The notes under the pieces: model-generated
What the model saw: the letters and a program-made list of their open reading frames with translations, nothing else
What the model was told of the DNA's origin: nothing
Databases searched by the model: none
In this document: in pieces, positions 3,001-54,512 of the stretch
How the letters are laid out: each line of letters begins with the position of its first letter
Position numbering within the stretch: the stretch's first letter is position 1
Made by a program: the position numbers and the translations under genes
Assembly: GCA_047495785.1 (NCBI GenBank)
Contig: JBLDXI010000028.1
Coordinates: 496,001-560,000 of the forward strand
Length of the DNA stretch: 64,000 nt
From: Lepidodermella squamata
Lineage: Eukaryota > Animalia > Gastrotricha
Direction: 5' to 3'

Positions 3001-3039
3001 GACCAGTCATACCTTTGTGGCTTGTCCACAAAATTCGGA

Positions 3040-3460
3040 CGAAATTCCGGTTTCTTTGCCAGAAAATTATGGACATTTTCGTATGAGTCTCGAACTTCTC
3101 AATTAGTATTAATTCACGAAACAGCCTATATCATTTTATATATAGCTATTTTGACTTATTTTCAGATGATTTTTCGATTATTCGAGTCGATTGAAAAGTG
3201 GGACATTCTCGCGCTCAGCACCTGCGAGCGTGGCCTTCGCACCGTGCATCAATACGGCTACGGCGAGCGTGACATAACACCAGTGTCGACAACCACTGGC
3301 CCTTGCAACTCGAGAAAGACGAGAGCGTGTTATCCTAGTAACAAGGATTGCTTGGGTTGACGAGGGAACTGGCTCCGATGTCATGCGTCGAGATCCAATC
3401 AGCATGTCCCATCCATGAATCGGTAAGAATTTTCTTATTCGTTTTTCATCTGATTGGCAA
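3040..3460 (+). repeat. Dispersed exon-like repeat unit, copy 1
   Basis: Colinear with 5015-5455. Shared blocks include tcgattgaaaagtg, acattctcgcgctca, ctacggcgagcgtgaca, ggttgacgaggg and ggtaagaattt...ctgattggcaaaatta. The core 3166-3422 is bounded by tttcag and gtaaga. Confidence 0.8.
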
Positions 3461-3954
3461 AATTATAAGATTCAGAGGTAGATCCGCACGGTATATTCGT
3501 TCAGTGGAATTTTGCGCACGTATTATTTCCGCATGGAATAATGAGTGATGGGAATTTTGCGCGTAAATTCGTGCTAACGCCGGATGACTTGTCTAGGCGT
3601 TAAGGTCGCCCTGATCTAACGCTTAATTATAGCTATAATGTAGAGGAATTTTCCTAACGTCTCGTTAACGTGTAATAAATGCCTGGTTTTACGGTTGATA
3701 AGTCTTGGATGGGCTGAGTTTCAGGAATTATTTTGGCATTTTCCAAAAGCATTTCCAGGAATCTTTCGACTAAGGCTTGATAATTCTTGACTATTCAAAA
3801 ACCATGTATTTTCTGCCGTTATTCACGCATTTCCCCGTCAAAGTAACGTTATGTCTGAAGGCATTTGCAGGCGTTAAAATAGATCCACCTTCGCGTTAGC
3901 TTGCTTAGAGTGGTGTTGCGATGATTATAACAAACTATTTTTGTCTGTGATGTC

Positions 3955-4907
3955 CATAGAGCTATTTTTAAGATAGAGCTCCTACTCCTGACTTGTTGGA
4001 AAAGTAAACAAATCAGGCGATTTTTTGATTTCCGATGTCTCATTCATATGGTAATTTCCTTGACGAAAAATTTGGTGGTACCAGATAGCGCTTCAAATGG
4101 GGAACACTGCGATTATTTTTTCGAAATTTTCAGAGAAATTTAGAGCAGGTAAAGCAGAAATTTAGAGCAGGTAAAAAACAATTATTTGATTTCGAATAAA
4201 TGGAAATTAACTAATAATTAGATCGAAAATCGAAATTGAAGCATGTTTCGAATTTAGTGGGTTATATCCTGATCACACTCTACATTTTGATGCTTGGGGC
4301 GAGCTTGGACGATTTTTTTCTGATTTTCTATAATTTTATAAATTATTCTGCTTGGATTTTACATTATAAAAATCGAGATTGCCCGTTGGATTGAATGCAG
4401 AATCTTTCTTGACAGCTTGTGCGCCACGTGTGGCTGAGTTGAGTCCGGAGCTGGAACCATAGCTGGTACAGACTTCGAATGCAGTGAAAAACCATTCATT
4501 CAACGAATAAAAAAAATTCCAGAAAATCAGGAAAAATTCGTCCAAGCTCTCTAAGCACTGAAATGTGGAGCTTGATCAGAACTACCTGGTCCGTTAAAAA
4601 TACGCTTCAATTTCGCTGCCACATTGGCAGCTGTCATGTTTAATTATTGATTAATTTCCTTTTTATGCGATTTTTCCCATTTCAAAAAAATATTGAGAAA
4701 AATAATCAATGTGCTCGTCGTTTCAAGAGCCATCTCGAACCGCCGGGTATGATTGATTGTAATCAATCGTTTACGAATAACGAGCGATCGAAACTCAACT
4801 GATTTGTTTACTTTTCCAACCACTCGACGCTGATTCATCCATCCGGCGCCCATGGCGTTTACAGGCTTAGTCAGGAGTAGGACCTCTATCTTAAAACTAG
4901 CTCTATG
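3955..4907. mobile_element. Non-autonomous foldback DNA transposon with CATAGAG termini, possibly P superfamily
   Basis: Inverted repeat 3954-3993 / 4869-4908 matches 38/40. Inner inverted blocks: 3995-4016 / 4799-4820 (22/22) and ~4231-4337 / ~4510-4615 (imperfect). The 8-bp flanks gtgatgtc / gtgatccc match 6/8. No transposase ORF. Confidence 0.75.
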
Positions 4908-11572: not shown

Positions 11573-14500
11573 ATGATTATATATTCTTTATTGTTATCTG
11601 TACTATTGCTCAGTCAATCGCTTGCCGAGTCTCCGGCTAGGGGTGAGTTTCATCACTCTGAAAAATCTAACATGCTGTCATGCTTAATGCTTTTCAGGCT
11701 TGGTCTACTATCCTCCATACAGCGATCCATTTGCTGATTCGGCGGATCCATGCTCTCAGCTTTTTGAATGGAAGGTGACAGAAGGGTTTGTTGACTTGGA
11801 CCTGACTTTTAATTGATTTTTAAACATGTTTTCGACATTTTAGAACTTTTGTTACTCCGAAACCTGATACAATGAAGGAGTGCCGTGGCTCCGTTAATAA
11901 TATTCCATTCATTGCTCCGAAAATTGCGAGCACAAGCATGGATCAGGAAGCCATCGAAGATTACTGGGTGGATCTGAGTCAAAACCCTCTTGGCAGTTTC
12001 AACATGGATTTTACATGTAAAGACCAGTCTGGCCGTGTTAAAACAGGCCTTTACTACTGGGTCTACATTTTCAAGAAGCAAGGTTTTACAAAGACCTACT
12101 CGTACCAAAGTATGATGTCTTGGGACACGGAGGGCAAGCTTTTATTCCAGCCCATCGAATCACAGACAGCTAACATCTCTTGCCGGTATTACGATTCAGC
12201 GAAAGGCTACATGACGCCAGTGCGAACCTGGCGCATCAGTTTTAAACAAACAAACTTCGTCCAGTCAAACAGTGTGCAAATACACAGCTGTTTGACTAAT
12301 AACCGACCAGTGCTGTCGTCGAATCGTGAAGTCAACGTTGTCGTCACATCGAATCGGCTCGAATTCTACCCATTTTGCCCGATTTACACGTGCAAAGTTA
12401 ACCCGACTAGCCCGTTCGAGCCGGTCATCTACACCCCGCAGCTTCCAAAATGTGAAATTAACAGCCGTGATCCGGCTAGTTACCAAACCTGCTACCTAGA
12501 CCCGCCGCAAGATCGCGAGGTCGCTTACTCCTGCAGATCTCCTGTTGGTGTGGGAGAAGGATCGGTTAAAATCAACGTGCAAAGTGGAGCGAGATTCGTT
12601 AACGACGAGGATTTCAAACCTCTTTACTTCAAAGAGGACGATCGAGATAGTGCGTTATACTGCACGGTAGACCCGAAAACTGCCCCCGATTCAGTACCTC
12701 AATGGGAGTTTTTGTCATCCAACTCTTACGGAGCGACTTATCAACCGTTGGTCTCAAGTTTGTACAAACAATTGAACGAAATTTCAACGGGCAGGCATCG
12801 GTTGATCATCACAACAGTTAAGCCTGAGCATGAGGGATCGTATCGTTGCGTTATCCCGCAATCATCGCGAGTTGTCGCGGGTGGTAAGCCAATTTACGGC
12901 TACTACTTCGTGAAAGTCTACGGAAAACCGCAATGTACCCCTTATGACGGTGCCTCAAGTCAGCCGTTGATGATCAACGGCGGTGCGGTTAATATCGATT
13001 TGAGGTTAATGTCTAGCTCATATATCACCATGCAATGTTCTCAATCTGTTGTGACAACGTGCCCAAATGATGACAAAACTTCAGATCGCGTGTGCGAGCC
13101 TGTTGCAGTGCTGAGGAAGGACGGCCAAGTTTGTGCCATGTCAAACGTGACGACTTCGAATTTCTGCGGCGGGACTCAAAATATCAAAACTTCACAGCCT
13201 AGTCCTGGTTTGTTGAGAATCGATGTTTCGCTGAATAATAACGGCGGCGCTGATGCGTCAGTTATCGAAAATATCCGCGGCTCTTACGTTGTCCAACTAG
13301 TCTACCCAGCGCCGGCTAATTTACACCAAGACGTGCCATTCACCATCAACGCAGCTCCGCCAACGCCGACAAACGCGGGCTCGCAGTCGGAGCGGCAGGC
13401 TGACGGCGGTCTGTGGTGGATTGTGTTAATCGTAGCCGGAGTGATTTTAATCGTGCTTATCCTGTTCGTCATTGGCTATTGCTTGCGGCAATCGGGCCAA
13501 ACTTACCCGGTTGACAAGAAGGAACGCGATGCTGGTCACGATCCGGTTAAAGAGCTCAAAGATGCGGGTTTCACCGACTTCTCAGCGCAACCGTAAGTCC
13601 TCCTGAAATTGTCTCATTTTTCTAGGTTTTAATCCTCGATATTTTTTGTCAATTTCTTCCCTCGGTTTTTCTAGACTTATACCTAGGTACGTAAAAGATA
13701 GGCTTATATTAAATTTATTAACTCTTGACAATTTCAACTCAACCATTGTTTCCGCCGTCTGTCGAGGAAATTCGCCAATATTCAGCCGTTAAATCGACCA
13801 AGTTATATTTTCTTTTAGGGCAAAGTTTTTGCGCTTTTTACACTTATGGCCTGGGGTGTGTAGTTTTTTTCGCGGTACCAGTCAGTACACAATTTGTATC
13901 GATTTTCGATTCAATAGCACTTGAAAAATTGTTTGTAGGCTGCTCGACCACTCAGAAATTCTATCCAATACAAAAGTGTTGGTTTAATTACTGCGATAAA
14001 AAAATCGACGGGAACACAATTAGAGTTACGGCATTTGAATAATTTAGCGACCACGTTTAATTTTCTGAAAAATATCTCGGATGATTTTTCGGGTGTTTAA
14101 TGGCGAATTTCCGTGGTGTCTATGCCACGACGACGACGGCGGCGGTTCAAAAGTTGAGAAAACTATAATGACCGCTTGCGCAAGTGTTGTTCATGTCGGT
14201 TTTGTGACCATTGTCGGCGCCAGACAGGTGTACTTCTTACTCTACTATCTACTATCATAACCACACACAACACAAAACACAAGAGCCAATAGGTATACCT
14301 ATTTCTGATGATGAAGCCTTTAATTGATATATCATTATCATCATCAATAACCACCGACCGACTGTTGTTTTCGTCGCCGCTGCTGCTGCTGCTGCAATAA
14401 TAATTTCTTACCCGCATGTGATATCTACGGCATCTAATCGTCACATACTACACGCAGAGAAATGCTAATATTATAACGTAAACAACAAAGCTATGCGAAG

Positions 14501-17500: not shown

Positions 17501-19722
17501 TCTTTTAAGGTGTCACCTGTCAGCAGGCCGTGTTTGTGCGGCTTGAGGCGTTGAGATCAATTATTTGATTGTAGGGCCACACGCGACGCGTATTTATAAT
17601 TCAGGCTGAATTCAGCATTCAGTTCTGTAATCACAACTCGCCTTGTAAATAATAAGTTTCGAGGACGCAAAATTCGATTAACGACCGGCCGCCGGATGGC
17701 GAGCGAGCGAGCGAGCGAGCGAACGAACGAACGCTTGATACATTGGCCTGTTTTTGTTGTTTGCGCCCAGATAATGAGGCGCCTTTTTATTGTTGCTTAG
17801 TCATCATCACCACCAGGTATAATGCGAAAAGGGCGATCGCGCAATTCGATCGTTTCAGCTGTTGTTTTTGCGGCGATGAGGATGTGGCCACAAGGCAAAA
17901 TGCGCTCCAGATATTGTATGTTTAATGCGGATCAGAGCAGCCTTCTTCAATAATAGCAATAATAACAACAATGGTTAAGGCGGCTGTTGGCTTTTTGAGC
18001 GCACACACCTGTAAATAGGCGCTCGCTAGTGGTTTATTATGATATCGCTACACTTTTGTTGTGTGCGGCCCGTCGATTTTCGCCGATTGATAATGACTAC
18101 ACAGCTGGTAGCAATCGCGGCTCGTATTATAAGAGAACGAGCGAGAGAGAGATGAGGAAAAACGCCAATTTATCCACGCCGGCTAGAGTACGATGCTTAT
18201 CAAGCCGTACAGCGTACGAAAAGAATCCAACTACGCAAGAATGAACGAATAAAAAATTACGCGTACTACAACTCGACAACAAATATCAAGTGAAAAACGG
18301 ATTTTACGCCCAATTTTTACCTGATATCTAAATTGATCCACCTCAAAATTTCAAGTTGTTTGATATTCAACTCTTGTCACGTGAAATTTTTTTGAAAAAT
18401 GAAATTTCACCTGATTTGGAGGCGTCTAAATTGCATTGTACGACAGGTTAGAGGTGATACGTTCGATGAAAGGCGGAGATAGTGCGTAAAAAACACGCCG
18501 CGGGCTCGAGTTCATTATCTCCTTATCTCGTACACGACTCATCATCGTGATATTTTATTACTCGTAAACGGCTAGTTGAGTTTGTTGTTTTTTCTGGGTA
18601 GATGCATAACCTCGGAATGCATGCAAACGCAAAAAACACGGGCAGCAGCGGAGATATCATTAAAAGACGTTTTTTTGCCCCGTTGCCCTGACGGGAAAAT
18701 ATTATTTCTATTATTTAATGTATTATTTTTGTGTCGACCACTGCGTTGAAATAACAACATTATTGTACCCTGTTCTGGCGCTGTACAGTACATATGCGTA
18801 TGAGCTGAGGTCAGAAACCGACGTGAAATGAACTGAAATTGCATGGCTAAAGAGTTGATTGGCCAAGCTAAAAATTGATAATAACAGTAATAAAAAGTTG
18901 ATTTTAATTCTCAAATCGATGTAAGATGCGGAAAATGGTCGTTAAGAAATTTGCAATAATTGATATTATAGAGATTAAGGCTGCGAAATGACGCTATTAA
19001 GGGAAAATTCATGTAATTGACTTGGCGAAAGCGTCGTTGACTGCGAATAATTGCTATTTTAGAACAGAAAGACAGTAGTAATTGAAGAGCTAGAAAATAT
19101 GGATCAGCTTGCAATTTTTGAATTTGTATTATTCACAAAATTTTATTTTGCGAAATTTGGCGGATGTTTTTAAGCCGAGTCAAGAAAACATCGTGGAAAG
19201 ATATAAAACAAAACCTAATATTTACTGTCTCAAATTGTAATTTGTAACTGTTAACCTGGTTCGTAAATGGTATAGATCCGCATATAATTATGATAAAAAA
19301 GCTTGCTTTCCACGAATTATCGATTGAATTAAATGTTTGTTTTTCTTGCTTGCAGAGCTCACGGAGGCAGTGAACCATCGCTAACCGGCAGCGTGAAAGT
19401 GCCCGAAGACTCGGACAGTTTAGGCGAATACGGCGAAATCGACCCGACGAAATTCAACGAAGACGGCTCCTTCATCCACCAGTACGGCCCCGGCGGCCAC
19501 CCGGCCTCGGCCGTGGCGCCCGGCTCCGCGCTCGGCCCTCGCATTTCAAACTCGCAACAAGTGCCTCTGCAACAGGTGGTCGTGCCGCCTGTCATTCCCG
19601 GGCCGCCGTCCCATCACAGGAACGCGGGCCCGGCGCCACCGCCCCGGCCCGAACGGTCGGCAGCGTCGCGGCAAGCGCTACCCTCGCACCACCCGGTACC
19701 ATCAGGCGGTACCAACGTCTAG
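11573..19722 (+). CDS. Atypical L1/neuroglian-family type I membrane protein (receptor A), ~757 aa; exons 11573-11642, 11698-11785, 11844-13592, 19356-19722
   Basis: Signal peptide MIIYSLLLSVLLLSQSLA. One clear Ig signature (LYC..W..HRLIITTVKPEHEGSYRC). TM WWIVLIVAGVILIVLILFVIGYCL. Juxtamembrane GQTYPVDKKE resembles L1 GGKYSVKDKE. A phase-2 splice (CC|gtaagt ... tgcag|A) joins SLTGSVK..DSDSLGEYG..KFNEDGSFIHQY, the L1 ankyrin-binding region. Additional exons inside the long intron are not excluded. Confidence 0.88.
17699..17733. repeat. Compound microsatellite (GCGA)n(ACGA)n in the long intron
   Basis: Run of gcga repeats followed directly by acga repeats. Confidence 0.9.
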
Positions 19723-24461: not shown

Positions 24462-24793
24462 TCTACCTAATTGTATTCCAACCAAAATCTGCTGCATTTA
24501 ACCGGTCTCATGAGCTTGCATTTGCAATTTGAACAAATCCGTTGTTATTTTATTAATAAAATCATGCGTCTCGATGACTTGGGCACGTGCTTTTCCAAAA
24601 AGGCGAAAGGCTGTATTTAAATAAGGAATTGAATTCCCTTCCTATCTCCTCTTGAATTAGGACGCATTAAAACCTGTCTTTCGTAAGACAGCTTATCTTT
24701 CAACCCCAGTTTCGAGGTCATAGATAAAGCCGACACAGGGTACATGGTCGACTGCTTGTTTTTTCTTAATAGCTAGTTTTTGAATTGCGAAAA

Positions 24794-26408
24794 ATGGCTG
24801 AAAAATCTGAATCTGTCTACGAGAAGCGAATCGATCGCATGCTGAGCCGCATGGCGGGTGTTCGCGATCCCAATGCGAGACGGCGAAATGTTAGCGGTGA
24901 AGGGGTTTTCAACCGATCAGAGGAAGCTCCACCCACTAATTTCTACTTGGAACCAGCTCGGGCGATCCCGATTCTAGCCGAATGCGACATTTTGGTGGTC
25001 GGGGGAGGTCCAGCTGGGATTTCAGCGGCTCTGGGCGCAAAACGAGCCGGGGCTGGGGATGTCATTCTAATGGAGCGATTCGGCTGTTTTGGTGGCGTCA
25101 TAACTACAGTTGGAATGGAAACGCTGGGTTGGTACCGCTATGAAGGCACAGTTGATTGCGAGGGCATCGGCACGGAAATGGAGCGATTGACGGCTGAAAT
25201 GGGCGGGACAATAAAATGGCCGTACAATGATAGCGAATGCTTAGATGCTGATTTCTTCAAACTGGTGGCAGATCATTTGATTCGCGAGGCTGGGATTCGA
25301 CCGATTCTTCACTGCCTTGCTGTTGAGGCCATTGTTGAGAATGGGGCAATAACTGGCGTTGTGACTGAGAGTAAATCAGGCAGGCAGGTGATTCGGGCGA
25401 AGCGGGTAATTGATTGCTCAGGTGACGCAGATATTGCGTATTTGGCCGGGGCTGACTACCGGAAAACGCCTCGGGACAAAATGATGGGCGTGACGACGGT
25501 TCTCAACTGTTCTGGTGTCGACAAACCGGCTTTCCTTGAATACACTAACAAGGTAATAAGAGTGGGGAAAGAAGGGCTTTCCAAAATCGAGGGGGATCTT
25601 AAAATTAGGAACTATTTCGGGACTCTTATGTTTTCTTCACTCAGTTTTGAATTCATTTTAGAATCCAGCGACTTACAAGGACTGGTCTCGAACTTGGAAG
25701 CAGGAAACAACTGGAAAGGAAGACACCCTATTAAGCCCATACTTGGAGGCTGAATTCGACAAAGCAAGCCAGATGGGAGTAATTCCTCCAGAAAGTACCC
25801 AATACCTAGCCGGTTCGTGGTCAGCGCTGTCAGATGCTGGCGAAGCTACAAACCTTAACTTGGTACATTTAATGGGCTACGACTGCACAGACGTCTTCGA
25901 TCTAACAGAGGCTGAGATGAAAGGCCGTATCGAAGCTATGCACGCGTTGATGGCCCTGAAAGCTGTAGTTCCAGGCTTCGAAAAAGCCAAGTTACGCAAT
26001 TTCGGCATGACCCTTGGCTGTCGGGATTCGAGAAAGATTATCGGCCGCTACAATCTAACAGAAGATGACGTGAGAAATCAAGCTCGCTTCGACGATTCAA
26101 TCGGAATTTTCCCTGAATTTATTGACGGCTATGCTGTTCTTGTGCTGCCGACGACAGGGCGGTATTTCCATGTGCCTTATGGTTGTTTAGTGCCGCAGAA
26201 TGTTGACAACTTGCTAGTTGGTGGGCGATGCGTGGCTGGGGATCGCGTTTCTCATGCTGCTATGCGAAATATGATGGCTTGTACAGTGACTGGGCAAGGT
26301 GCCGGTGTTGCTGCGGCCGTTTCAATTCGCGAGGGTGTAACAACCGGCAGTGTTGATGTTAGATTGATTCAAGATGAACTTTTACGGCAAAAAGTTCGAA
26401 TTCACTAG
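24794..26408 (+). CDS. FAD-dependent oxidoreductase (FAD_oxidored / PF12831-like, bacterial-type), ~501 aa; exons 24794-25552, 25662-26408
   Basis: Rossmann motif DILVVGGGPAGISAA, then ERFGCFGG, IDCSGDAD, RDSRKIIG and VPYGCLVP..DNLLVGGRC..RNMMAC..GQGAGVAAA. A 109-nt GT-AG intron joins the two ORFs in frame. Confidence 0.92.
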
Positions 26409-29541: not shown

Positions 29542-29589
29542 TTGATAAGTCGAGACTGATTGAGATTTGGTTATTCCAGTAGGTAGCTA

Positions 29590-29991
29590 CAGTGAAAGTT
29601 GTCTAAACCGGACTAAGGTCGTGCCAGGCAAAATCGTCCGGTTTAGAGAAAGTCCGAATTATTTTAAACCGGACGACGGAATCGACAATTTTAATATAAA
29701 TAATGAACATATTCAGCTATATTCGCAATAATTTGGAAGTTGAATTTTTTTCGAAATTTTGAGGCTACTCTTGTCAGGCAGGGGCTGACACTTTCTTCAA
29801 AATTATATAGAAAATTGGACTTTTTATTGCATAAACCGGACTTCGAGCCCCAAATCCGTCCGGTTTATACACCAGTCCGGTTTAGAGAGTCCGCTTTAGA
29901 CAATAAAATTATAATGTAAAGTCCACACTTTCGGATCGAGCCACCCGAAATCGTCCGGTTTAGACCGGTCCGGTTTAAACAACTTTCACTG
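29590..29991. mobile_element. MITE, Tc1/mariner superfamily (CAGTG termini, Tigger/pogo-like)
   Basis: 24-bp TIR cagtgaaagttgtctaaaccggac / gtccggtttaaacaactttcactg with one mismatch. TA flanks at 29588-89 and 29992-93. Multiple internal gtccggttta / taaaccggac repeats. Confidence 0.92.
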
Positions 29992-30097
29992 TATATAAGT
30001 CACAGCAGCATGTGAGCTTCCTTGTTTTATTTCGACGAAAAAACAAGCCATTTGGCAGCTAAATCATTCATAATCTAAATGCATGCACAATTGCGGA

Positions 30098-33000
30098 TTA
30101 CGGCGAACCATTTTCGCTGAAAACAGCGCCACTGTTATGCATATACCGGTTGGGCTGGTTGTTCGCCAGTCTCGCGCCCTGATGGCTCATCTTCGGAAAC
30201 AAGTCCGGCGAGCCAATCGGAGACGCGCCAGGCTGTTGTCGCGCCGGCAGGCTGTAGTGAACCCGTTTCGGGGTTGTAACCTGCCCTGAGCTGTAAATTG
30301 GATTGCTGCGGTAGGCAGGAGGCGACGGAATCCGCGCAGGGGGAGGCACTGTAACCAACATAGGCGCCCGGCTGCTTATCACCATCGCCGCATCGTCCTC
30401 ACGGAAGGCATCTTCCTCACTCTCGAAATCGTTCTGCATGTTAGGTTTCACTATGGCTTCTGGCTTCCGTTGATGCTGATGCCGCGCGTAGTATTCGGCG
30501 ATCTGCTTCTGGCGTTGGTTCCTGACTACGGCATACTCGCCGTGGTGGTATCGGTAGCAGCAGCAGCTTACGAAGATTGCGAATGTCAGGATTAGGACGA
30601 AGCAGACCAGCATAAGGATGATCCAGTTGAGCCATGACGACCAGTTCCAGTTTAGGCACATGGTCCATAACGATCGAGGCCGTTCGTCTAAAACAGATTT
30701 CAACAATACGGTTAGGAATTTGGACCAACATTTAAGGCTCGATTCTGAAACCAGAGTGAATTATTTCTATCTGCGAATCGCCACAGAGACACTTCAGCAA
30801 GGACAAATCAGCATAATTTTATAGGTCAAGTTAAATAGCTGCCCAACTTGCGAAATTCCAATTTTCTGGAGAATCGATGAAGCTTCTCAGCCCGATACAA
30901 TTTGGGCTCAAGTTTATTGAGCGACAATACAGCATACGACATTTCAGCCCTCGGCAACAAAAACAACAGAATAAAATTGCTTTCCAAGAGCTGAAATGTT
31001 GCTTCACGGGAATGTCCTTAACTTTCTCGGGCTGTAATGTTGTTTTTGTGCTCAACTGTCGCGAATGGAGGTTGCGAGCCAAAAACATGTTTCCAGGGCT
31101 CAAAGAGATTTAAGAATCAATTATGGACCCCAATACCTCCATTTACATTCTTTCCCTATTAAGCACACAAAATCACTCACCAACAATCGTATCATTAGTC
31201 GCGTTCATCGCAAAAGCACCCAAATCAATGGATGCCAAGTTCAAGATCGCAATATGAGCTGTCGTGGTCGTAGTTTCAGGCTCAGTAGTAGTCGTACTTG
31301 TCGATGTCGTAGTCGTCGAAGTCGTAGTGGTTGTCGGCGTTGTAGTCGTACTAGTCGTTGTTGTTGTCGTAGTCGACGTCGTCGTTGTCGTTGTAGTCGG
31401 TTTCGGCGGAGCTTTCGCCCGAATCTTAATCGGAATTTCCATTCTCAAATTAACAGGCGAGCTGTACATGATGTTAATGGCGTAATTCCCCGCGTCCTGA
31501 GCGATATTTTCGTGCCGGCGTAAGGCTTCGTCGTAGTCGAAGAGGGAGCCTAGAATGTCGAAGTCACCCTCGCCTGAGCCGAAACCGCTGCCCATACCGC
31601 TTCCTAATGGTAAGTCCATAGGGTCGGGTCTTCTAAGGCTGACGAACATTTCCAACGGTAATAAAGATCGCACTGAGACCCTCTGAGCAGAACCCTGAAA
31701 TTAAGCTCGAATTTAAATTTATTCCGAAAGATGACAAAAAACCCGAAACAGGAATAAAATTTCCCATTTCCAAAGTATTTCTGGAATTTTCGGTAATCGG
31801 AAATTTTCGAAATATCAGCAATTTTCCGATGATTTCCTAAATTGTGACCCGCGTCCAATTGAAGCAATCTTTCCCATTCCACACTTCAAAAGGATCCGGA
31901 TATTTTTCGGGTAATTTCGGAAATTTTCCATTTCTTCGGTTATTCCTGGGTTTTCGACTTACGCATGGTCCCAAGTTGTTTCCAATGACTTCCGGACTCG
32001 GCTCGGTAACATTAGTCATTGAACATAGGAACCCATTCTTGTATAGGCCAACAACAGGATCGCACAGTGGACTGCCAGGCTTGCAATTCGCCTCAACGCT
32101 GACCCCACGTGAGCATTTTATCAACAACTGGTTATTCCGAGTAACATCCAACGGCGTCGTAGTCGCATTTCGCGAGGCGTTGTGCTCGATCAGCAGCTGC
32201 CCTGTAACCGCGTCGTAGACCGAACACCGCGGCTGTGGGTAGACCTTGAGGAAGTAGTAGCCGTAAATAGGTGGCCCGCCTGGTTTCTCAGGGTCATCCG
32301 GTTCAGGACCGGGTAGAATTCGAGTGCTTTGGCGAACTACACACCGGTAACTGCCTTCGTGCTCCAGTTTGACCTGGCGAATTATGAGCCGGTGCCGGCC
32401 GGTTTGGATATCATCAACGGCCTGAAAATCCGGGTCACGGTCAGAAATTTCTAGGAAAAAATAGAAAAATATTCAACTTTCAAACAATTTAAAATTGTCA
32501 AAAAAGCGGGAATTGCGAGAATTTTGAAAGTTTTAAGAATTTGAAAAAATTCAAAAACGTGTGAAACCTTGATATAAGCCTGAAGTCGAGTCGTAGCGTT
32601 CCCATTTTGGTTCAACATCGGGTGATGAATCTGGGTCAACGTGGCAATTCATGCCTCGATTGACGTCGTACTCCTTGAAATAAATCGGCTTGAATTCATC
32701 GTCATGCTTGAACCTAGCTCCGCCTGAAAATTAAAATCAAAATCAGAAAAATATGGGAATTTGGGTAATTGGGACCAACTTTGGACTGAAATTTTGACGC
32801 TGCCTGGGTCTCTTTTAGCGACGCCTGACGAGCAGTTGTAGTAGACGAAATCGACTAGAAGCGGGTCAACAGAGCATGTCGAATAGCTGCCCGGGTCGTC
32901 ACGGTTCGGTTTGCAAAAGTAAGGTATCATCGGTTCGTATTTTATCCTATATAATAATTTCGAAAAATTAAATTAAAAAAATTAAATTTTTCGAAAACCT

Positions 33001-34471
33001 ACGCAGTTCGGGTGGCACTGGCAGGCGACGGTAGGCAGGTAGCCACCGGGCAATAGGCGGCGAATTCGAGCCGGTTTGAGGTGACTACAACGTCGATCTC
33101 GCGATTCGGCCACGATTGAAGTTTCGCTTTCTCCGATCCGCATGGAACAATCTCGACCGTTCGACTAGGATTTGTTGGCACTGAAATTATTAATGGAGTC
33201 GATTATAAAAAAATACCGAAAATACCGTTAACATCTGTTTTATGAAAAAACGCGACTAATTTCAAAAAAATCAAAATTTCAATTTTTAATTATTTAGAAT
33301 TTTTAATTTGAAAAATCTTTTGTACCTAAATGTTTCCCATTTCTTTAATTTTACATAATTTTTTATATTATTTCACTGAAAATTAATTTACATGGATTTC
33401 GTCCGAATTCGAGCCGCCACGTGCGAATGGGCACAAAATAGCCCCTTGACGCGTCGTAGTAATGGCACGTGATATTGGCCTTCCTGGGCTCCAACGGCTG
33501 AAACAGCATGCGGCCCTCGGTATCCCACGGCATCATAGTCTGATATGAATGCGTTTTAATCACCCTACGAAACCGGTAATGGTACGCCCAGAAGTAGAGC
33601 GACGACGGGCGAACAACGCCGTTACGGTCACGGCACGTGAACAGCAACAGGTGGTTGAAAAATCGATTCGTCTGATCGACATCCTCGCCATCGGCGTTGA
33701 CGTCAGTCCCGCCGGCGCCGATGGACAGATCGATGACGAAATCGTCGAAAATCTCTTCGGTAGTGTCGACTTCGAGGCGAGGGGCGACGAAGCGTAACCC
33801 GTTGACGGCGCCGCGGCAGTTCGACCGTGACCGGTCTAGGGCGGGCGGGCTGTAGGTTTCGTGGGGCGTGATCGACCACGCGTGGTATTGCGTGCATGCT
33901 TCATTGTCCGGGTCAGCGTAAGGTGGGTAGTAGACTAGACCTAAAAATATTGGAGAAACAGGTGCAAATCATATCAAAATTGAACACGTGGGAGACCCAG
34001 ATACCCGAAACCCGAAAATACCCGATTTTCGGTCATTTCCGGTATTTTTTGGTCATTTTTACCAGACAGCCCAAGAGACCAAAAAATCTGCACCGATTCG
34101 GAACCTATCGAAAATTACCGTTAAAGACTCTTTCGGGTATTAGCGGGATTTTCGGTAAATTTCCACGATTTTTTTTTAAATTCGATTAAAAAATTAGAAT
34201 TTTGAGAGACAATTGAATCAGGGGATGAAATAATATTAGCCTTTCTCTAAAAAATGAAAATCATCAAAAGAGGCTGAAGCCCATAATCAGTTTCAGATCT
34301 TCTCCAACCTGCCTCCGAATTTTGCCCATTTAATTCAAAATAAAATACTCATTAGGTTTATATAGACTCACCTTTTGCATTCGGATGATTGGCGTAAATT
34401 TCATAAATTGCAGTGATGAAAATGAAAAACGTAAAAAATATTCGGTTAAAACTGTAATAATATTCGCACAT
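30098..34471 (-). CDS. Paralog of receptor A (receptor B) with Ser-Gly cluster, Thr-rich stalk and divergent tail, ~930 aa; exons 34471-34372, 33940-33392, 33180-33003, 32946-32780, 32723-32568, 32450-31963, 31694-31181, 30744 (or 30687)-30098
   Basis: The spliced product aligns colinearly with receptor A: GLVYYPPY, SYQTMMPWDTEGRMLFQP, VVVTSNRLEF, SGARF..D.EFKPIYFKE, TGRHRLII..VK.EHEGSYRCV, PIYGYYF.KVY. It has a signal-peptide exon and TM WIILMLVCFVLILTFAIFVSCCC. All introns are GT-AG and the 2799-nt CDS closes in frame. Confidence 0.88.
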
Positions 34472-44400: not shown

Positions 44401-47400
44401 AATGATGCGTATATTTAGTACATCAGGGAAATTTGATCGGCAGGCGCCTTTCAAAAATGAGCAGACCATACGACGCTGCTAAATCGTAATTTTAAATATT
44501 CGATAAATTATTCGCCGTTTCCCTGAACTAAATTTTACCACGGAACCAATGAGGATGAAAATGAGGATACCAATAAAGAATCGCAATTTTAATCAATTGC
44601 GTTTTTCTGTTTTTTTATATTATGACTTGACAGACCTGAAAATAAATCAAGACTGAAACTTGTCAACAGCAGCAAACTCCCGAGAATTTCGGGCCAGCCG
44701 GGTGAAATGCCACTGAGTTTTCACGGGCTTCTCCAGAAAATTTTAAATCTAGCCCGTAAAATCGCGATGGAATATTTATTAGGTTTAACTTTAGAAAATT
44801 AGCCCCGAAACTTCGCAAACTCGAAAAAATAGAACTGGCAATCTTTCACGGCCGAGCCAAAAATACCAAATGTTTACGCAATTTATCGGATAATCGTCAA
44901 CCGAATGCTAAGGATCTCCAATAACTTTGTGATCAGCTACTGATGTAAAGTCCAAACCTGGACATTTTCCAACTTCAAATATTAGCTTACCTGTGATCCA
45001 ACGGAAGCGACATCCGGCTGCTGCGGTGTCGATTGCACCTGGTCGCCCGACCGCAGAGATGAAACTGAATGCTGCCGGTAGACAATAGGCGCGGGCAACG
45101 CCATAGCAGCCAGCGTCGAAAACACCTGCGACGACTCGGTGTGAAGATCGATAAGCGAATCGTCCGGAACTTGCGTAGTCGCCGCCGCAATTTGCGCCAC
45201 GGCCGAGCTCAACTTCGACCGCATCTGACTGAACCCGCTCGTCAGCTGCTTCGACGCGGATGAGAACAAAAATTGCGGGGTCGATCGCGATTCTTTCATC
45301 GCAGACCCGCCTAGCAAATCCCGTTGAGGCGACTCGGCCATTGTTTTATTCAAAATCTTCTTGAATAACCCGCCACCGGATGAGGTTGAAGTCGAGGTTG
45401 TATCCAACTGCCGTGGAGCCTGGTCAAATTCGGAATTATCCGACCCGGGTGAAGTAATATTGATCGGAGGCGGCGATTTCATGGTATTACCATTTGGCGG
45501 TTTCGGAATTTCCGCAATTTGCGACTCGTAATCCGAGACTATCAGCGACGACTGCGACTCAACCAGCCGACGACCGGCCTGGCCGACCGGACCCGCGGCG
45601 GCTTTTGAGATGAAATCAAACATTTTCCCCATTTTCTCTCGTAAATACGGCGAGGTGTAATTCGTAGCCGACGGCTCGACATTCAACGAATTCTGCGATG
45701 AATCAACGTTGTTTTGATTTTCAAGCCGTTGCGGCGCCATGAGCGGGGTTTCCGGGAACTTCCCGAACCCAGCCGGGCCGTTTTTGACCCGAGGCGAGTA
45801 GATCAGCGCACTCGCGTCATCCCGCGGCGGTTCTTTCAGCGCCAGCGTGGTCGGCGGCTGAATTTGCTGGTCATTCGCGCTCGACTGCGACCCGGAGACC
45901 AGCGACTGGTGCGATTTCGTCTTAAACCTCACCCCAGCGGCTTTGAACTGCGAAATCGCGCTTACGACGTCTCGCAGCAACCGCCACAACCGGGCTGGCC
46001 GGGATTGGCTCTCAGTTTGCCACGAAGTTTGGTACAAAACTTTATTGCACAGAGCTAAAGTCGCGGCATTTGGTTCGAAATTCAGCTTTCGAATTCTCAT
46101 CAGCAACTGAACTGCAACGGCTGGGTGCCGGTATAGATCAGCCATTGCGAAAATCACTCGATACGGGGTTTGGTCCGAGCCTAAAGCGTCGCTGTACCTC
46201 GCCCAGGCCCTCGCCTGCGTCACTGCATACGACAGCAATTTCCGCCTCGAATGAACCAGGCGGCAGAAGGCGGGTAAAACGCAGAACCAAACTGCGAATG
46301 CGTGGGCCTCGATGATTTTCGCCCATTCGTACGGAATCGACGACCGCTGTTGCACTAACGCGTTCGACGACTTCACCTCCTGCCGGGTTCGCTTGATTAT
46401 CGCCCAGTCAAACGCCTGCCTGTTCCACCTAACAGCCGGTTCGTCGATTTTAGACCCGTTTGTCAGCATTGAATCACTCGATAAATGTTGCGCCACTGCG
46501 ACTGGCTGTGGTCTTTGGTGGAATAAATCGTGATTTAACATCGGAAAATTTGTGTAGGAGTAAGCCACGCCCTCCTCTAGGCCCTGGCATGACGGGGGCG
46601 GCACAACCACTGTTCTTTCGTTATCGCAATCGCGTGATGTTTCAATCAGCCGATAACGATTTGTGTTGTTATTCGACATGATTTCGTCGACTTTCCGGCA
46701 GCAATCCGTGAAAAAATCGAAAACCTGCGGCTTCGAGCTGAACGTCAACTCCTCGACAAATTTCGCAAAATTCTGCAGCCCGCCCAAGTTGAGCAGCTCG
46801 AAAAATTTCGCCAGCGATTTATCGCGGGTTCGCACGAAATCTTTGATGCGGAACAACGAATCGACGTCGAGATTCGTCTTCGTTTTCACGTTAGTCGGCA
46901 CGATAAGGAACGCGTGGTAGCCGCGGAGAATTGTGGCCATGAAAAATAGGAACGCCTCGCGGCATTCGAGCTCCAGCGCGGTCTCACGCTGCTTTCGCAT
47001 CTCCTGTTTTTCGTGTGAAATATCGTTGTTCACATCGACTAGTTCCGAGAATAAACTACTCGTGCGTTGCAGCGTTTTATACACCTTTTCAAGGCGACTT
47101 TGCAACTGCTGCGCCGGCTTTTTCGGCAGCAATTTCCAATTTAAATGCTTTTTATCCTCCGGCAGCAAGATATTTCCCGTGTCTAAATCGATGCAAATAA
47201 CCTCGGGCGGGGGTTCGTATAGCTCGAAGTAGCTGGTATCGACTCCGATGATGAAGCCCATCGGGCACTGGACGATTTCACTCAGGGCTAACGGGCAGAA
47301 CGGGATGAATGGAAACGACCAGATGAAGGGAAATATCATAGTTTTGATGGCTTCGCAAGCCAGAGTTAATACCGAGGGTCGAACGCTGTGCACGAGCATC

Positions 47401-48831
47401 GATTGGCCGAGAATTGCGTATAAAAAGACGTCGAGCGTCTTTTCGACGCCAATGTCGCTGAGAAGTTGTGTGAAAGAAGCGCACGATGGCGGCAAGGGCA
47501 GGTCTTCGGGCCGAGTGAATAAAATCGACTCTTCGGGCGAGAGTTGGGCAAGAATTCGAGGCCTTTCCGCTGAAGGAACTGGCACTTCATGAAGTAAATG
47601 GCTGATAAATCTATTCGAAATATTTATATTTTAGAAATTCTATTTTAAACATCTAATTGCTTACCTTTCGATAGGAAGCCGATGATTCTCAGTGAAAGAC
47701 ATTTTGTAAATGTGCGTGAGATATTGTTTGAACTCGGAGAAGAAGGCGTACTGGGTAAGCAGGCAAATGGCTTTATTCGACGCCAATCGCTTGCCCTGGT
47801 CACTCAACGGAATGTCCGGGCACAGGCCGAGCCGGTTAATCTGCGTCGCACTCAACTGCTCCATCGAGCAAGACTCGTAAAACGTTACCACACAACCGTA
47901 ATATTGAATAAATTTCTGAAGGAAAAATGGTTATATTTTTTGAGCAATTTATGATGATTTTCTTACATCTTCAGAGGAATCACTCGCATCGTTTTGCGTG
48001 TGAGTTATCACAAAGGACGAGAAAACAGGCTGAGGGTCGCGAACATTTGCAGGCCAAGCTTCGATGGTAGCACCCAGTGGTAGACAAAACATGGGAATAT
48101 TGCAGTTGAGCGGGTAAGGCGCGGCCGTATCATCCAGCGGATATCGCGAAAGCACCTCTGAAAACAAAATAATTCAAAAGACATACAAGACATCCCTCGC
48201 AAAACAAACCTGGTTTGAAAGATATAACGTGGTCTCTTAACCTGGCTTTTCGGTAGCATAGATAAATATCAGCACCAACCAGTCCAGTGTTAATTTTCTG
48301 TTCGATTTTGCAGAACGTATGAGGTGGCTCCTCGCCCTTGCTAGCGATAATGACGCAAATGTCCATAACGACCAGCGTGTCCAATGTAGCATTAGGCGGT
48401 GAGCGAGAGTAGGTAACGTAAAGGCACGGGCTTGAAACGTTGTTAATGTTTGCAATACGGCCTGTTGGAGTTTGGAAGACTGCAGCTGCGTTTTCGAGCA
48501 AACGAGCGCCCTCTTGCATGACTCCCATGTCGGTGAGTGGAGCCCGGTCTCGGCCTCGCCTGTAGCATAGGTAAACTTCAGGCGTGCGAAAACTACCAAG
48601 ATTCAAATTGGCACTGTGGCCTGCAGGTGTTTTCTCGATGCATTCGTAACCTCTCGGCACAGGATCGCCAAGACCTTTAAAAATAATCGCTACATCAGTG
48701 ATGGGATCAAGAGGTCCAGAAGATCGCTTTGTTGGGCTCTCCGGGCCGGAGTAGTCTTGAAAGTTTTGAGGTTGTTCTGGTAATCCAACCACAACAAAAT
48801 AGTCGGCTATTTGCGATATGTTAGCAGACAT
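41402..48831 (-). CDS. DENND4: DENN domain-containing protein 4 / Crag (Rab GEF), ~1730 aa; exons 48831-48210, 48157-47967, 47915-47665, 47610-44991, 43680-42752, 42155-41878, 41703-41402
   Basis: N-terminal DYFVVVGL plus MABP region (PITDVAII..YECIEKTPAGHSANLN..YLCYRRGRDRAP). uDENN (RYP..PMFCLPLGATIEAW), DENN (IFPFIWSFPFIPFCP..PMGFIIGVD) and dDENN (REAFLFFMATILRGY). C-terminal Cys-rich block and DRPP. The model closes in frame. Confidence 0.95.
44145..44670. mobile_element. Possible DNA transposon remnant with GACTTG subterminal repeats (hAT-like) in a DENND4 intron
   Basis: Cluster of (gt)gacttg(a) motifs at 44157-44260, and again at 44623-44662. No clean TIR or TSD found. Confidence 0.35.
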
Positions 48832-52133: not shown

Positions 52134-54512
52134 ATGGCTTCTGCGAAAAAGAAGCAAGACGAGAAGAATTTGCAGCTGCTCAAATCGCTAGTAGCCCTGT
52201 CGTTCAACAAGCAGTGCTTCGATTGCAGCCAGAAAGGCCCGACCTACGTCGATCTCACAATCGGCTCATTCATATGCATGAGCTGCAGCGGCATCCTACG
52301 CGGCCTCAACCCGCCCCACCGCGTTAAATCCATCACAATGTCAACATTCACCGATGACGAGATTGAATTCATCAAATCACGCGGCAATTTCTTCTGCCGC
52401 GAAGTCTGGCTCGGCAATTTCGGGTCGGACAACGCGGCGCCTACCGTTGATTTGCATAACGACCAGAATAAAAAAGACTACCTTTGCACGAAGTACGAGA
52501 GGCGGCGGTGGTACATTGAACCGTCGCCTGGGTTGTTTCAGGAGGCGAAAATTATGACTGACACGGGCCTGGCAGAGCTAGAACAGGCGAATCAGCCGGT
52601 GGCGCGGCCTGGGCGCAGTTATTCCGGGTCGGTCCCGGTTGCCCCGACTGCGCTAGGCCTTGCGAGTAATTTGCACGCGAATGGCACACAGTCAGCGACA
52701 AAAATGATTGGCCAGTTGCCGATGCCGTCGTCCGACGCGGTTGCGAGACCAGTTTCGCCGCTTCAAACGCCTTTTCAACAAATTGCAGCTCCAGCGCATC
52801 ATACACATCACACACAGCCTCAACAACCTCAACAGGTACGAATTTCTTGTAGCATTTCGGTCGTTCCGCAATTCATTCGAACGAAGACCCAACCCAAAAA
52901 TTCAAATCATCGTGAAACTTATTTTTCGGATAGAGCTCGAAAACGAAAAATTTAGGGGGTTTAGCAATCGCTGACCTATAACATTCAAAAACGAAAATCA
53001 CTGCAAAATCATAGCACCGTTGCTAAGGAGCGGAATCACCTTACCTGGTCATTTTTATCTGACCAGTCTTTTACCATAGTAAAACTCCATATTGCGAGCT
53101 CGTAGGACTCTTGTCTTGCCGAGAAAAGTCGCTATGTGGGGATTTTGTATCCCCAAATTACGAAAAATTGAAAAAAACGCGAAGATTTTTGACCATTCCA
53201 TGGCGTGTTTTGGCAAATCAAATGTAAAAAAACAGCCAATGATTAACACCTTTCACCATGGATCTTCTAAGCAAAATAAGAAATGACAGGATAGGTGTAT
53301 TTCAATTTAGGGACCCGCTAAAATTAATTATGAAATGCCTGATTTTGACTTCCCACTTTCATAACGTCAGCAATTTGTAATTCGAAGATTGCCATTTCTT
53401 AAGACGAAATTTTGATTGAAAATTTGAGAAAATTGAAATTAATTTATTTCTGATTTGTTTAGCCCGCGCAGTCTTCGCAGCAGCAAATAATATCGCTATT
53501 CGACGACGATTTAGAAACAGCGCTTCGAAAGCAGCAAATTCAACAGCAGCAACAACCAGCCCCAGCCGCTTTCTCACCCCCAATCGCCCAACAGCATCAA
53601 CCACCTGTTGAATCGAAACCGCAAACATCCTTCCCAGTCAATTTCTCCTCCATGGAGCCGACCCCTTTCACAAAAGCTGCCCAGTTACAGCAGCAGCAGC
53701 AACAACAACAACAACAACAACAAAATCATCACCACCAAGCAGCACCCCAACAACACCAACAACAACAGCAACACCAGCAACCTCCGAATCAGTTTTCACC
53801 CGGCCAACAAAATTCGGCGAATTTCGGCGGTTTCGCAGATTTTGACTCGGCATTTGGGAAAAGCGATGCCTTCAAGCCGCAAGCCGCACCTGTAATAGTC
53901 GCCCCGCCACCCGATCGGTACAAAGCCCTCGAAGAACTCGACGACCTGTTGACACTTACCGGGTCGACAGGCGTCGTATCAAGCGGCATCGATTGGGGCG
54001 CGGCTGCTCTTCGCGACCAAAAACCGGTTCAGCAGCAGGCGAGAATGCCGAGCTCACATCCTCAAACCGCGTTTTCGTCGAACGGCCACGGATTCACGGC
54101 TAATTTCTCGACGACGGGCGGTCTCGGCGCGGACCCTTTCAATACGTCGTCGACCTTTGCCGCGGCTGGAATGCCGCCTGCTTACTCTCCGGCCGCGCCT
54201 TATGGCCACGCGATACCCCAGCCGCAATTTCCAACCGCACAGCAACAACAACAACAGCAGCAGCATTTCGGCGGTTTCGGCGCGTTTCCACCGCAACAAC
54301 AGCAGCAGCAGCAATTTCCAGCGGCCTTCCCGCCGCATTCCGCCAGCAATCCGTTTTTATCGGCCGCGGCTGGGTTCGGCCAGCCGGCGATTCCGCCGTC
54401 CTTTTCGACTTCGAACGGCTTCGGAGCGCCGCCTGCGAACGGTTTTGGCGTGGCTGCCCAGCCGCAGATTCGGCCGTCGATTTCGGCGAATAATCCGTTT
54501 TTATTCAATTGA
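52134..54512 (+). CDS. AGFG1: ArfGAP with FG repeats (AGFG1/Hrb/drongo-like), ~583 aa; exons 52134-52835, 53463-54512
   Basis: NKQCFDCSQKGPTYVDLTIGSFICMSCSGILRGLNPPHRVKSITM ArfGAP zinc finger. FADF, DRY.AL..LD, FG repeats, NPF motifs including terminal NNPFL, and polyQ tracts. Confidence 0.95.

Follow-up and report, generated by a model that had tools for sequence, protein, structure and literature searches.

A transcribed paralog without the ankyrin-binding motif in a probably gastrotrich-restricted family of four-domain immunoglobulin-like membrane proteins

We analysed a 64,000-nucleotide stretch of the genome of the gastrotrich Lepidodermella squamata (GenBank assembly GCA_047495785.1, contig JBLDXI010000028.1, positions 496,001 to 560,000 of the forward strand), hereafter the window, which contains two related genes, A and B, for membrane proteins with immunoglobulin (Ig)-like domains. 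Our results make it likely that gene B, the subject of this report, represents the ankyrin-less branch of a lineage-restricted family of four-domain Ig-superfamily adhesion proteins, the other branch of which carries the cytoplasmic tail of the L1CAM family. The family is probably a gastrotrich one. B is transcribed and under purifying selection, and RNA shows four of its seven introns spliced as in the gene model. A preliminary description of the window had interpreted A and B as paired receptors, with B rebuilt as a proteoglycan or mucin. It recognized a true paralog with the same ectodomain plan and without an ankyrin-binding tail, but the proteoglycan/mucin design and the pairing were not supported.

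B lies on the minus strand at 34471-30098 and consists of eight exons with a total length of 2742 nt, i.e., 913 codons plus a stop codon. The reading frame is intact, the phases agree, and GT-AG is found at every border. Exon 1 (34372-34471) starts with an ATG at 34471 and encodes a signal-peptide-like hydrophobic start (MCEYYYSFNRIFFTFFIFITAIY). It ends in phase 1 within the Gly codon preceding LVYYPPY, which is the codon that also holds the first intron of A. Exon 1 was placed here from the sequence, with its ATG and hydrophobic core, and from the homologous junction in A, where an intron interrupts the same codon. Exon 2 (33392-33940) encodes the YYPPY segment and the Ig-like domain D1, and is covered by RNA contigs, with an RNA depth of ~0 in the flanking introns. 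The next domain, D2, starts in exon 3 (33003-33180), and exon 4 (32780-32946) encodes this Cys-rich domain. The canonical Ig domain D3 begins in exon 5 (32568-32723), which was placed by homology and phase. Exon 6 (31963-32450) contains the remainder of D3 with the motif EHEGSYRC and the first half of the membrane-proximal domain D4, while exon 7 (31181-31694) contains the second half of D4, a Ser-Gly loop and a Thr stalk. Exon 8 (30098-30687) encodes a Trp-rich juxtamembrane segment, a transmembrane helix, a tail of 152 residues and the stop codon. A polyadenylation-type signal, AATAAA, is located on the same strand at 30026-30031, ~70 nt past the stop.

The expression of B is apparent from a comparison of the locus with two public sequencing runs. 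Run X1 behaves as cDNA; the DNA of run X2 is genomic and comes from a slightly different allele or strain. Contigs of X1 cover the exons of B, and their depth is zero or near zero across every intron bin. Four contig joints with CT..AC ends skip exactly intron 3 (33002-32947), intron 4 (32779-32724), intron 6 (31962-31695) and intron 7 (31180-30688). The eight-exon model that had been proposed for B is consistent in frame and phase, and is confirmed by RNA at these four junctions. Over B, 40 differences between X2 and the window were listed, 30 of which fall within whole codons of the gene model. Only two of these are non-synonymous (D-to-E and R-to-P). In exon 6, all 15 listed variants are synonymous. 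With 28 synonymous against 2 non-synonymous allelic variants, B appears to be maintained by purifying selection.

Alternatively, B might be a duplicate of A that is decaying or no longer functions. The tail of B cannot be aligned with that of A past the first seven residues, and B evolves faster than A, as such decay would have it. However, a frame of 913 codons has stayed open over eight exons, the gene is transcribed and spliced, the variants are overwhelmingly synonymous, all cysteines are conserved, and a B-type gene has been kept in a second organism, all of which leaves decay with hardly any probability. We rejected the pseudogene reading on the intact frame, the spliced transcripts and the 28:2 variant ratio. 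Likewise, the absence of expression or the pseudogenization that the preliminary description had named as grounds for abandoning its proposal was not what we found, given the spliced contigs, an intron depth of ~0 and the same variant ratio.

The paralogy of A and B is well supported by tblastn. The exon of A that encodes 574 residues (11872-13593, plus strand) matched the minus strand in order at 33818-33399, 33166-33017, 32945-32733, 32724-32005 and 31490-31398, with 36-48% identity and E-values down to 1e-36, and is colinear with exons 2-7 of B. This bears out the earlier claim that a convergent paralog of A with a colinear ectodomain lies ~10 kb away. Block by block, the two ectodomains are 33-51% identical, and B retains each of the 17 cysteines of the A ectodomain. 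The stops of the two convergent genes are located at 19722 (A) and 30098 (B), 10.4 kb apart, with three unrelated genes in between: a tetraspanin, a PF12831 FAD oxidoreductase and an open reading frame (ORF) of 396 residues. The 5' part of A (11573-13592, plus strand) was divided, from frame and homology, into three predicted exons: 11573-11642 for the signal peptide, 11698-11785 for the YYPPY segment and 11844-13592 for the four Ig-like domains, the transmembrane helix and the juxtamembrane segment. Its tail exon lies inside an ORF at 19333-19722 (plus strand), and carries the sequence FNEDGSFIHQY. One intron of A (11786-11843), which interrupts the YYPPY segment, is absent from B. Conversely, the four ectodomain domains of A occupy a single 1.75-kb exon, whereas B and its B-type ortholog (see below) interrupt the same region with introns that are foreign to A-type genes. 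This difference reflects either intron loss in the A branch or intron gain in the B branch.

Relatives of the family are scarce. Searching 1.84 billion proteins with a family profile yielded only P0002, P0003, P0005 and P0017 as members, all of them exon-sized ORFs on metagenome contigs, and the other hits were confined to the canonical Ig domain. In word-index protein searches, exon 6 and exon 2 of B gave no match and the big exon of A matched only P0001 and P0002, and a scan of JGI metagenomes with the conserved D1 block gave no match either. Sparse sampling of the phylum may explain much of this scarcity. One related organism, seen in four ENA samples, has both types of gene, with A-type and B-type contigs in the same four samples. 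Its A-type gene, P0001, is 62% identical to A, and its B-type gene (6449-9077 on contig L007) lies on a separate contig.

The introns of this B-type ortholog match introns 3, 5 and 6 of B in codon and phase, and A, P0001 and P0002 lack all three. Furthermore, B and the B-type ortholog form a split in six of six exon-block trees, five of them with 81-100% support and one with 60/55. The two genes also share an insert of ~15 residues relative to A in D1 (exon 2 of B), an insert of ~21 residues in the D4 loop (Y-D/E-x-A-L..H..I.QD.GNY), the stalk start PPKPTTT and a G-x-Y-x-AV motif. Because the B-specific introns are shared and all six trees join B with the B-type ortholog, we infer that the duplication of A and B is old, and predates the divergence of the two organisms. 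Two of the other relatives, P0002 (L005, 1053-2501) and P0017 (L011, 473-1081), end in a hydrophobic C-terminus and have no cytoplasmic tail; in P0017 the sequence GGSGSSADGS directly follows the last domain. The hydrophobic end could be a glycosylphosphatidylinositol-anchor signal or intron read-through, and the family may thus include lipid-anchored forms.

The two branches differ most clearly in their tails. The Pfam profile Bravo_FIGEY matches the tail exon of A at E=2.3e-11 and the 38-residue juxtamembrane segment of A at E=0.022 (start of the profile), but gave no match in the tail of B even at E<=10. The same contrast is found in the related organism, where the tail exon of P0001 matches at E=1.8e-12 and the B-type ortholog does not match. 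The transmembrane helix of B (WLNWIILMLVCFVLILTFAIFVSCCC, 30557-30634, minus strand), read from the hydrophobicity of the sequence, ends in a Cys triplet and contains no charged residues, and the tail carries no motif of the immunoreceptor tyrosine-based inhibitory (ITIM) type. A Pfam match to 'Comm' at the transmembrane region (E=0.13) was discarded as hydrophobic noise. Just past the helix, HHGEYAV (30527-30547, minus strand) resembles a G-x-Y-x-V remnant of the juxtamembrane KGGKYSV of L1, a putative ezrin-binding motif of the ezrin-radixin-moesin (ERM) type (PMC3737756). The counterparts are SGQTYPV in A and RGQYNAV in the B-type ortholog, so that only G-x-Y-x-V is common to them. Further along, the tail of B contains a PPxY motif, PPAY (30311-30322, minus strand), which is unchanged among the listed alleles. 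The preliminary description had reported a tail without FNEDGSFIxQY that keeps G.Y.V in HHGEYAV and carries PPAY, and it was accurate on each of these points; its list did not include an NPxY motif, NPIY (30293-30304, minus strand), six residues past PPAY. The tail of the B-type ortholog has neither PPxY nor NPxY.

The fold of the ectodomain was approached through A. An AlphaFold (AF2) model of the A ectodomain is all-beta with four domains, with a mean predicted local distance difference test score (pLDDT) of 61.7; it is good at residues 210-480 and poor at the N-terminus. The best PDB matches of this model in Foldseek were multi-Ig proteins (pIgR, titin, Dscam, Sidekick, contactin and neurofascin), with E-values down to 3.6e-11 and a probability of 1.0, and the look-alikes found with a language model (Atlas) were all Ig families. 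In the profile search, D3, with its EHEGSYRC motif, was the domain matched by multi-Ig proteins. Pfam detected in A one sub-threshold Ig domain (Ig_3, 21 bits against a cut-off of 30) and no FN3 domain; in B, a scan covering exons 2, 7 and 8 whole and part of exon 6 found no Ig or FN3 domain. By its alignment with A, the ectodomain of B is predicted to consist of four divergent Ig-like beta-sandwiches.

Several features of B had been taken as signs of a glycan-bearing design. The Ser-Gly cluster (GSGMGSGFGSGEGD, 31563-31604, minus strand) has three Ser-Gly arranged as (GSGx)3 with Asp/Glu flanks, and occupies a loop before the D.G.Y strand of D4. Its Ser-Gly lie at residues 32, 36 and 40 of exon 7, with the acidic residues D24, D27, E42, D44 and D46 nearby. 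When the ectodomain letters were shuffled at constant composition, three Ser-Gly within 12 residues arose in only 22 of 20000 trials. Judging from the model of A, the loop would be positioned between the last two strands of D4, just before the D.G.Y motif (DAGNYAINIMY). According to a sequence rule for xylosylation, Ser-Gly is used with acidic residues within ~8 residues (PMC2063922), and the cluster has this arrangement, in a protein with a predicted signal peptide. The Thr stalk (31260-31397, minus strand) has 46 residues, 91% of which are Thr or Ser, and is a degenerate tandem array with mixed codons. The preliminary description had placed both the cluster and the stalk exactly, and had put the length of the stalk at ~45 residues. 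Its further claim, that the ectodomain was rebuilt as a proteoglycan or mucin, does not agree with the B-type ortholog. At the Ser-Gly position this gene has IPIGNVSNLTTIE; opposite GSGMGSGFGSGEGDFDILGSLFD it reads GNVSNLTTIE, with two N-glycosylation sequons and no Ser-Gly. Its stalk consists only of PPKPTTT, with three Thr, followed by ~25 mixed residues. For this comparison MAFFT scattered the exon-7 fragments, and the loops of A, B and the ortholog were aligned by eye. Because neither the Ser-Gly cluster nor the long Thr run nor PPxY is present in the B-type ortholog, these decorations appear to be species-level or lineage-specific additions rather than a design of the B lineage. A glycosaminoglycan on the Ser-Gly loop of B in this species is nonetheless plausible and a fair hypothesis on its sequence, though not a feature of the B lineage.

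The decorations might also be neutral. The chances are about even that the Ser-Gly cluster and the Thr run are low-complexity expansions by slippage that serve as a flexible loop and a spacer, in which case B would carry no glycosaminoglycan. The cluster indeed reads as three 12-nt units (GGAAGCGGTATG, GGCAGCGGTTTC and GGCTCAGGCGAG), the Thr run is a degenerate tandem array, and both features are absent from the ortholog, whose loop carries two N-glycosylation sequons instead. Yet, the units have diverged and use two families of Ser codons (AGC and TCA), which argues against recent slippage. Tandem Repeats Finder did not flag the cluster as a repeat, and by hand count its units match at only 9 of 12 and 5 of 12 positions. 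No listed X2 variant falls inside the cluster while synonymous variants lie on its flanks, and real attachment sites typically have acidic and hydrophobic flanks like these (PMC2063922). Moreover, a Thr/Ser stalk in a protein of the secretory pathway is very likely O-glycosylated whatever its origin.

The pairing of A and B was the central proposal of the preliminary description: with a common recognition module, A would be anchored to ankyrin and B would act as a co-receptor or decoy, decorated with glycosaminoglycan or mucin, for the same ligand or for A itself. We consider this unlikely. The same domain plan with all 17 cysteines, the convergent arrangement at 10.4 kb, the retention of both types in a second organism and the agreement of the Ser-Gly cluster with the xylosylation rule would all fit, and there is a precedent in LAD-2 of Caenorhabditis elegans, a non-canonical L1CAM without the ankyrin motif that acts as a co-receptor (PMC2213605). 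However, ectodomains that are only 33-51% identical are unlike the near-identical ectodomains of known paired receptors, and the B-type ortholog has neither a Ser-Gly cluster nor a long Thr stalk nor PPxY. Three unrelated genes separate A from B, and A and B had parted before two species diverged whose A copies share 62% identity. The preliminary description had also suggested looking for the pair in related genomes. Both types were found in one related organism, but on separate contigs, and the neighbouring genes on these contigs (14-16 kb each) have no homolog within the window. The low identity, the old split and the lack of shared neighbours thus speak against a shared recognition module. 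A yet bolder version, which we regard as slightly less likely still, is that B might be an Ig-superfamily membrane proteoglycan that binds A or the ligand of A. This would form a two-part adhesion system, one part ankyrin-anchored and the other glycan-bearing and endocytosed, that would have arisen in a little-studied phylum separately from the classical L1CAM ectodomain.

We therefore favour the reading of B as the ankyrin-less branch of an Ig-superfamily adhesion family, although several observations weigh against it or against parts of it. RNA support for exon 1 is weak, with one contig match of 60 nt (34392-34451). Both flanks of this cDNA contig do not match the window; one is an oddly oriented cDNA oligo of the SMART type, and the other resembles the rest of exon 1 without being identical to it. 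The contig may be chimeric, or may derive from another locus with a similar signal-peptide exon, and was not used for placing the 5' end of B. The fold of B was assigned by proxy, through the colinear alignment with the model of A rather than through a model of B. A model of D4 alone (pLDDT 73) gave VIA-align Z-scores of at most 6.5, mostly to V-set Ig domains, which is within generic beta-sandwich resemblance. An ESM Atlas shape search with D4 returned only generic bacterial beta-sandwiches with TM-scores of about 0.5, and for this predicted domain 'Ig-like' is meant loosely. The identity of B and the B-type ortholog (38-62%) is below that of A and its ortholog, so that the two may belong to the same subfamily without being one-to-one orthologs. 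Finally, PPAY and NPIY are short, lie in a tail rich in Pro and are not conserved in the ortholog, which makes them weak indicators of trafficking.

If B is indeed this ankyrin-less branch, it would be a type I membrane glycoprotein of 913 residues, with a signal peptide, a short YYPPY segment, four Ig-like domains with 17 cysteines and a Thr stalk, followed by one transmembrane helix and a 152-residue tail that is probably disordered. The A-type branch carries the L1CAM cytoplasmic domain with its FIGQY ankyrin-binding site, while B-type genes are marked by introns and by inserts (in D1 and the last D4 loop) that are peculiar to them, and by a tail that evolves fast. With only the putative juxtamembrane G-x-Y-x-V (ERM-type) remnant left in its tail, B would have no ankyrin coupling and could serve as a mobile surface protein for adhesion or recognition, free of the ankyrin-spectrin skeleton. 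Its turnover might be controlled through the tail, where PPAY could recruit WW-domain ligases of the Nedd4 type and NPIY could recruit phosphotyrosine-binding (PTB) domains or endocytic adaptors, along with an acidic cluster. The copy of this species has probably gained further glycan as its stalk lengthened and as the exposed D4 loop underwent a (GSGx)3 expansion of the slippage type; the stalk would bear O-glycans, and the loop might bear a glycosaminoglycan chain.

The L1CAM family (L1, neurofascin, NrCAM, CHL1, neuroglian and SAX-7) provides the nearest frame of comparison. The L1CAM ectodomain has six Ig domains and three to five FN3 domains. As is predicted for A and B, these are type I adhesion proteins of the Ig superfamily; A shares with them the Bravo_FIGEY domain and FNEDGSFIHQY, and B has a juxtamembrane G-x-Y-x-V that may correspond to KGGKYSV. 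Unlike them, B is without the FIGQY region, and the A/B family has four divergent Ig-like domains in which FN3 was not detected and, beyond one Ig domain, no sequence similarity to L1 ectodomains could be detected. The closest precedent is found in C. elegans, where LAD-2, which exists beside the canonical SAX-7, has a co-receptor role and a tail that is 'completely divergent' and contains no ankyrin-binding motif (PMC2213605). As with A and B, one genome thus holds a canonical ankyrin-binding member and an ankyrin-less paralog. However, LAD-2 has the full set of six Ig and five FN3 domains and a 40-residue tail, whereas B has a 152-residue tail with PPAY and NPIY and an ectodomain of another, lineage-restricted family. 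The resemblance of B to LAD-2 is therefore best seen as an analogy rather than demonstrated homology.

Similarly, the NF186 isoform of neurofascin has a mucin-like domain near the membrane (PMC2121080); as in B, a Thr/Pro-rich stretch that presumably bears O-glycans separates the folded ectodomain from the membrane. It differs in being an alternatively spliced insert in an ankyrin-binding protein, while the stalk of B is constitutive as far as seen, belongs to the paralog without ankyrin binding and has expanded in this species alone. The Ser-Gly clusters of syndecan- and perlecan-type proteins are comparable in that Ser-Gly recurs, with Asp/Glu no more than eight residues away, in a protein of the secretory pathway, yet the cluster of B lies in a loop of a folded Ig-like domain and is missing from the ortholog; it is a candidate site by its sequence. 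Paired receptors of the Ig superfamily (KIR, SIRP and PILR type) combine near-identical ectodomains with opposed signalling, through ITIM versus a charged transmembrane segment. They resemble A and B as linked paralogs with a common ectodomain plan and differing tails. In contrast to these pairs, the identity of A and B is 33-51%, the helix of B is uncharged and its tail has no ITIM-type motif.

The candidate for a new system hence turns out to be a real gene of an ordinary kind, an old and diverged adhesion paralog without cytoskeletal coupling, comparable to LAD-2 beside SAX-7. Its evolutionary value is modest: it points to a lineage-restricted Ig-superfamily family with the L1CAM tail on one of its branches, to which only a few metagenome fragments among 1.84 billion proteins are detectably related. 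B also illustrates how expansions of a loop and a stalk can supply candidate glycan sites to the copy of one species. Should the Ser-Gly loop bear a glycosaminoglycan, B would offer a natural case of an Ig-like domain that has recently gained a proteoglycan site.

The window has a GC content of ~42%, compatible with the 43% published for the genome (PMC11660948), and short GT-AG introns with TTTTCAG-type acceptors, and Rfam gave no match within it. Just downstream of the 3' end of B, at 29588-29993, lies an element resembling a miniature inverted-repeat transposable element, with 26-nt terminal inverted repeats that are 96% complementary and 354 nt apart. The depth of X2 contigs is about 1500-4200 in this element and about 90 in B. 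Because its depth is so far above that in B, the element probably has dozens of genomic copies. The PF12831 FAD oxidoreductase (24785-26405, plus strand), located between the tetraspanin and the 396-residue ORF, consists of two ORFs that match positions 1-192 and 237-416 of the profile (E=1e-36 and 5e-46). It may contain a short intron, and may have been acquired horizontally. Further along the window, beyond B, are neighbours of a housekeeping type: a DENN-domain protein (44985-47585, minus strand), an acyltransferase (PF01553; 49848-51119, plus strand) and an ArfGAP domain followed by a region rich in Gln, Pro and Phe-Gly (52134-52952, plus strand).

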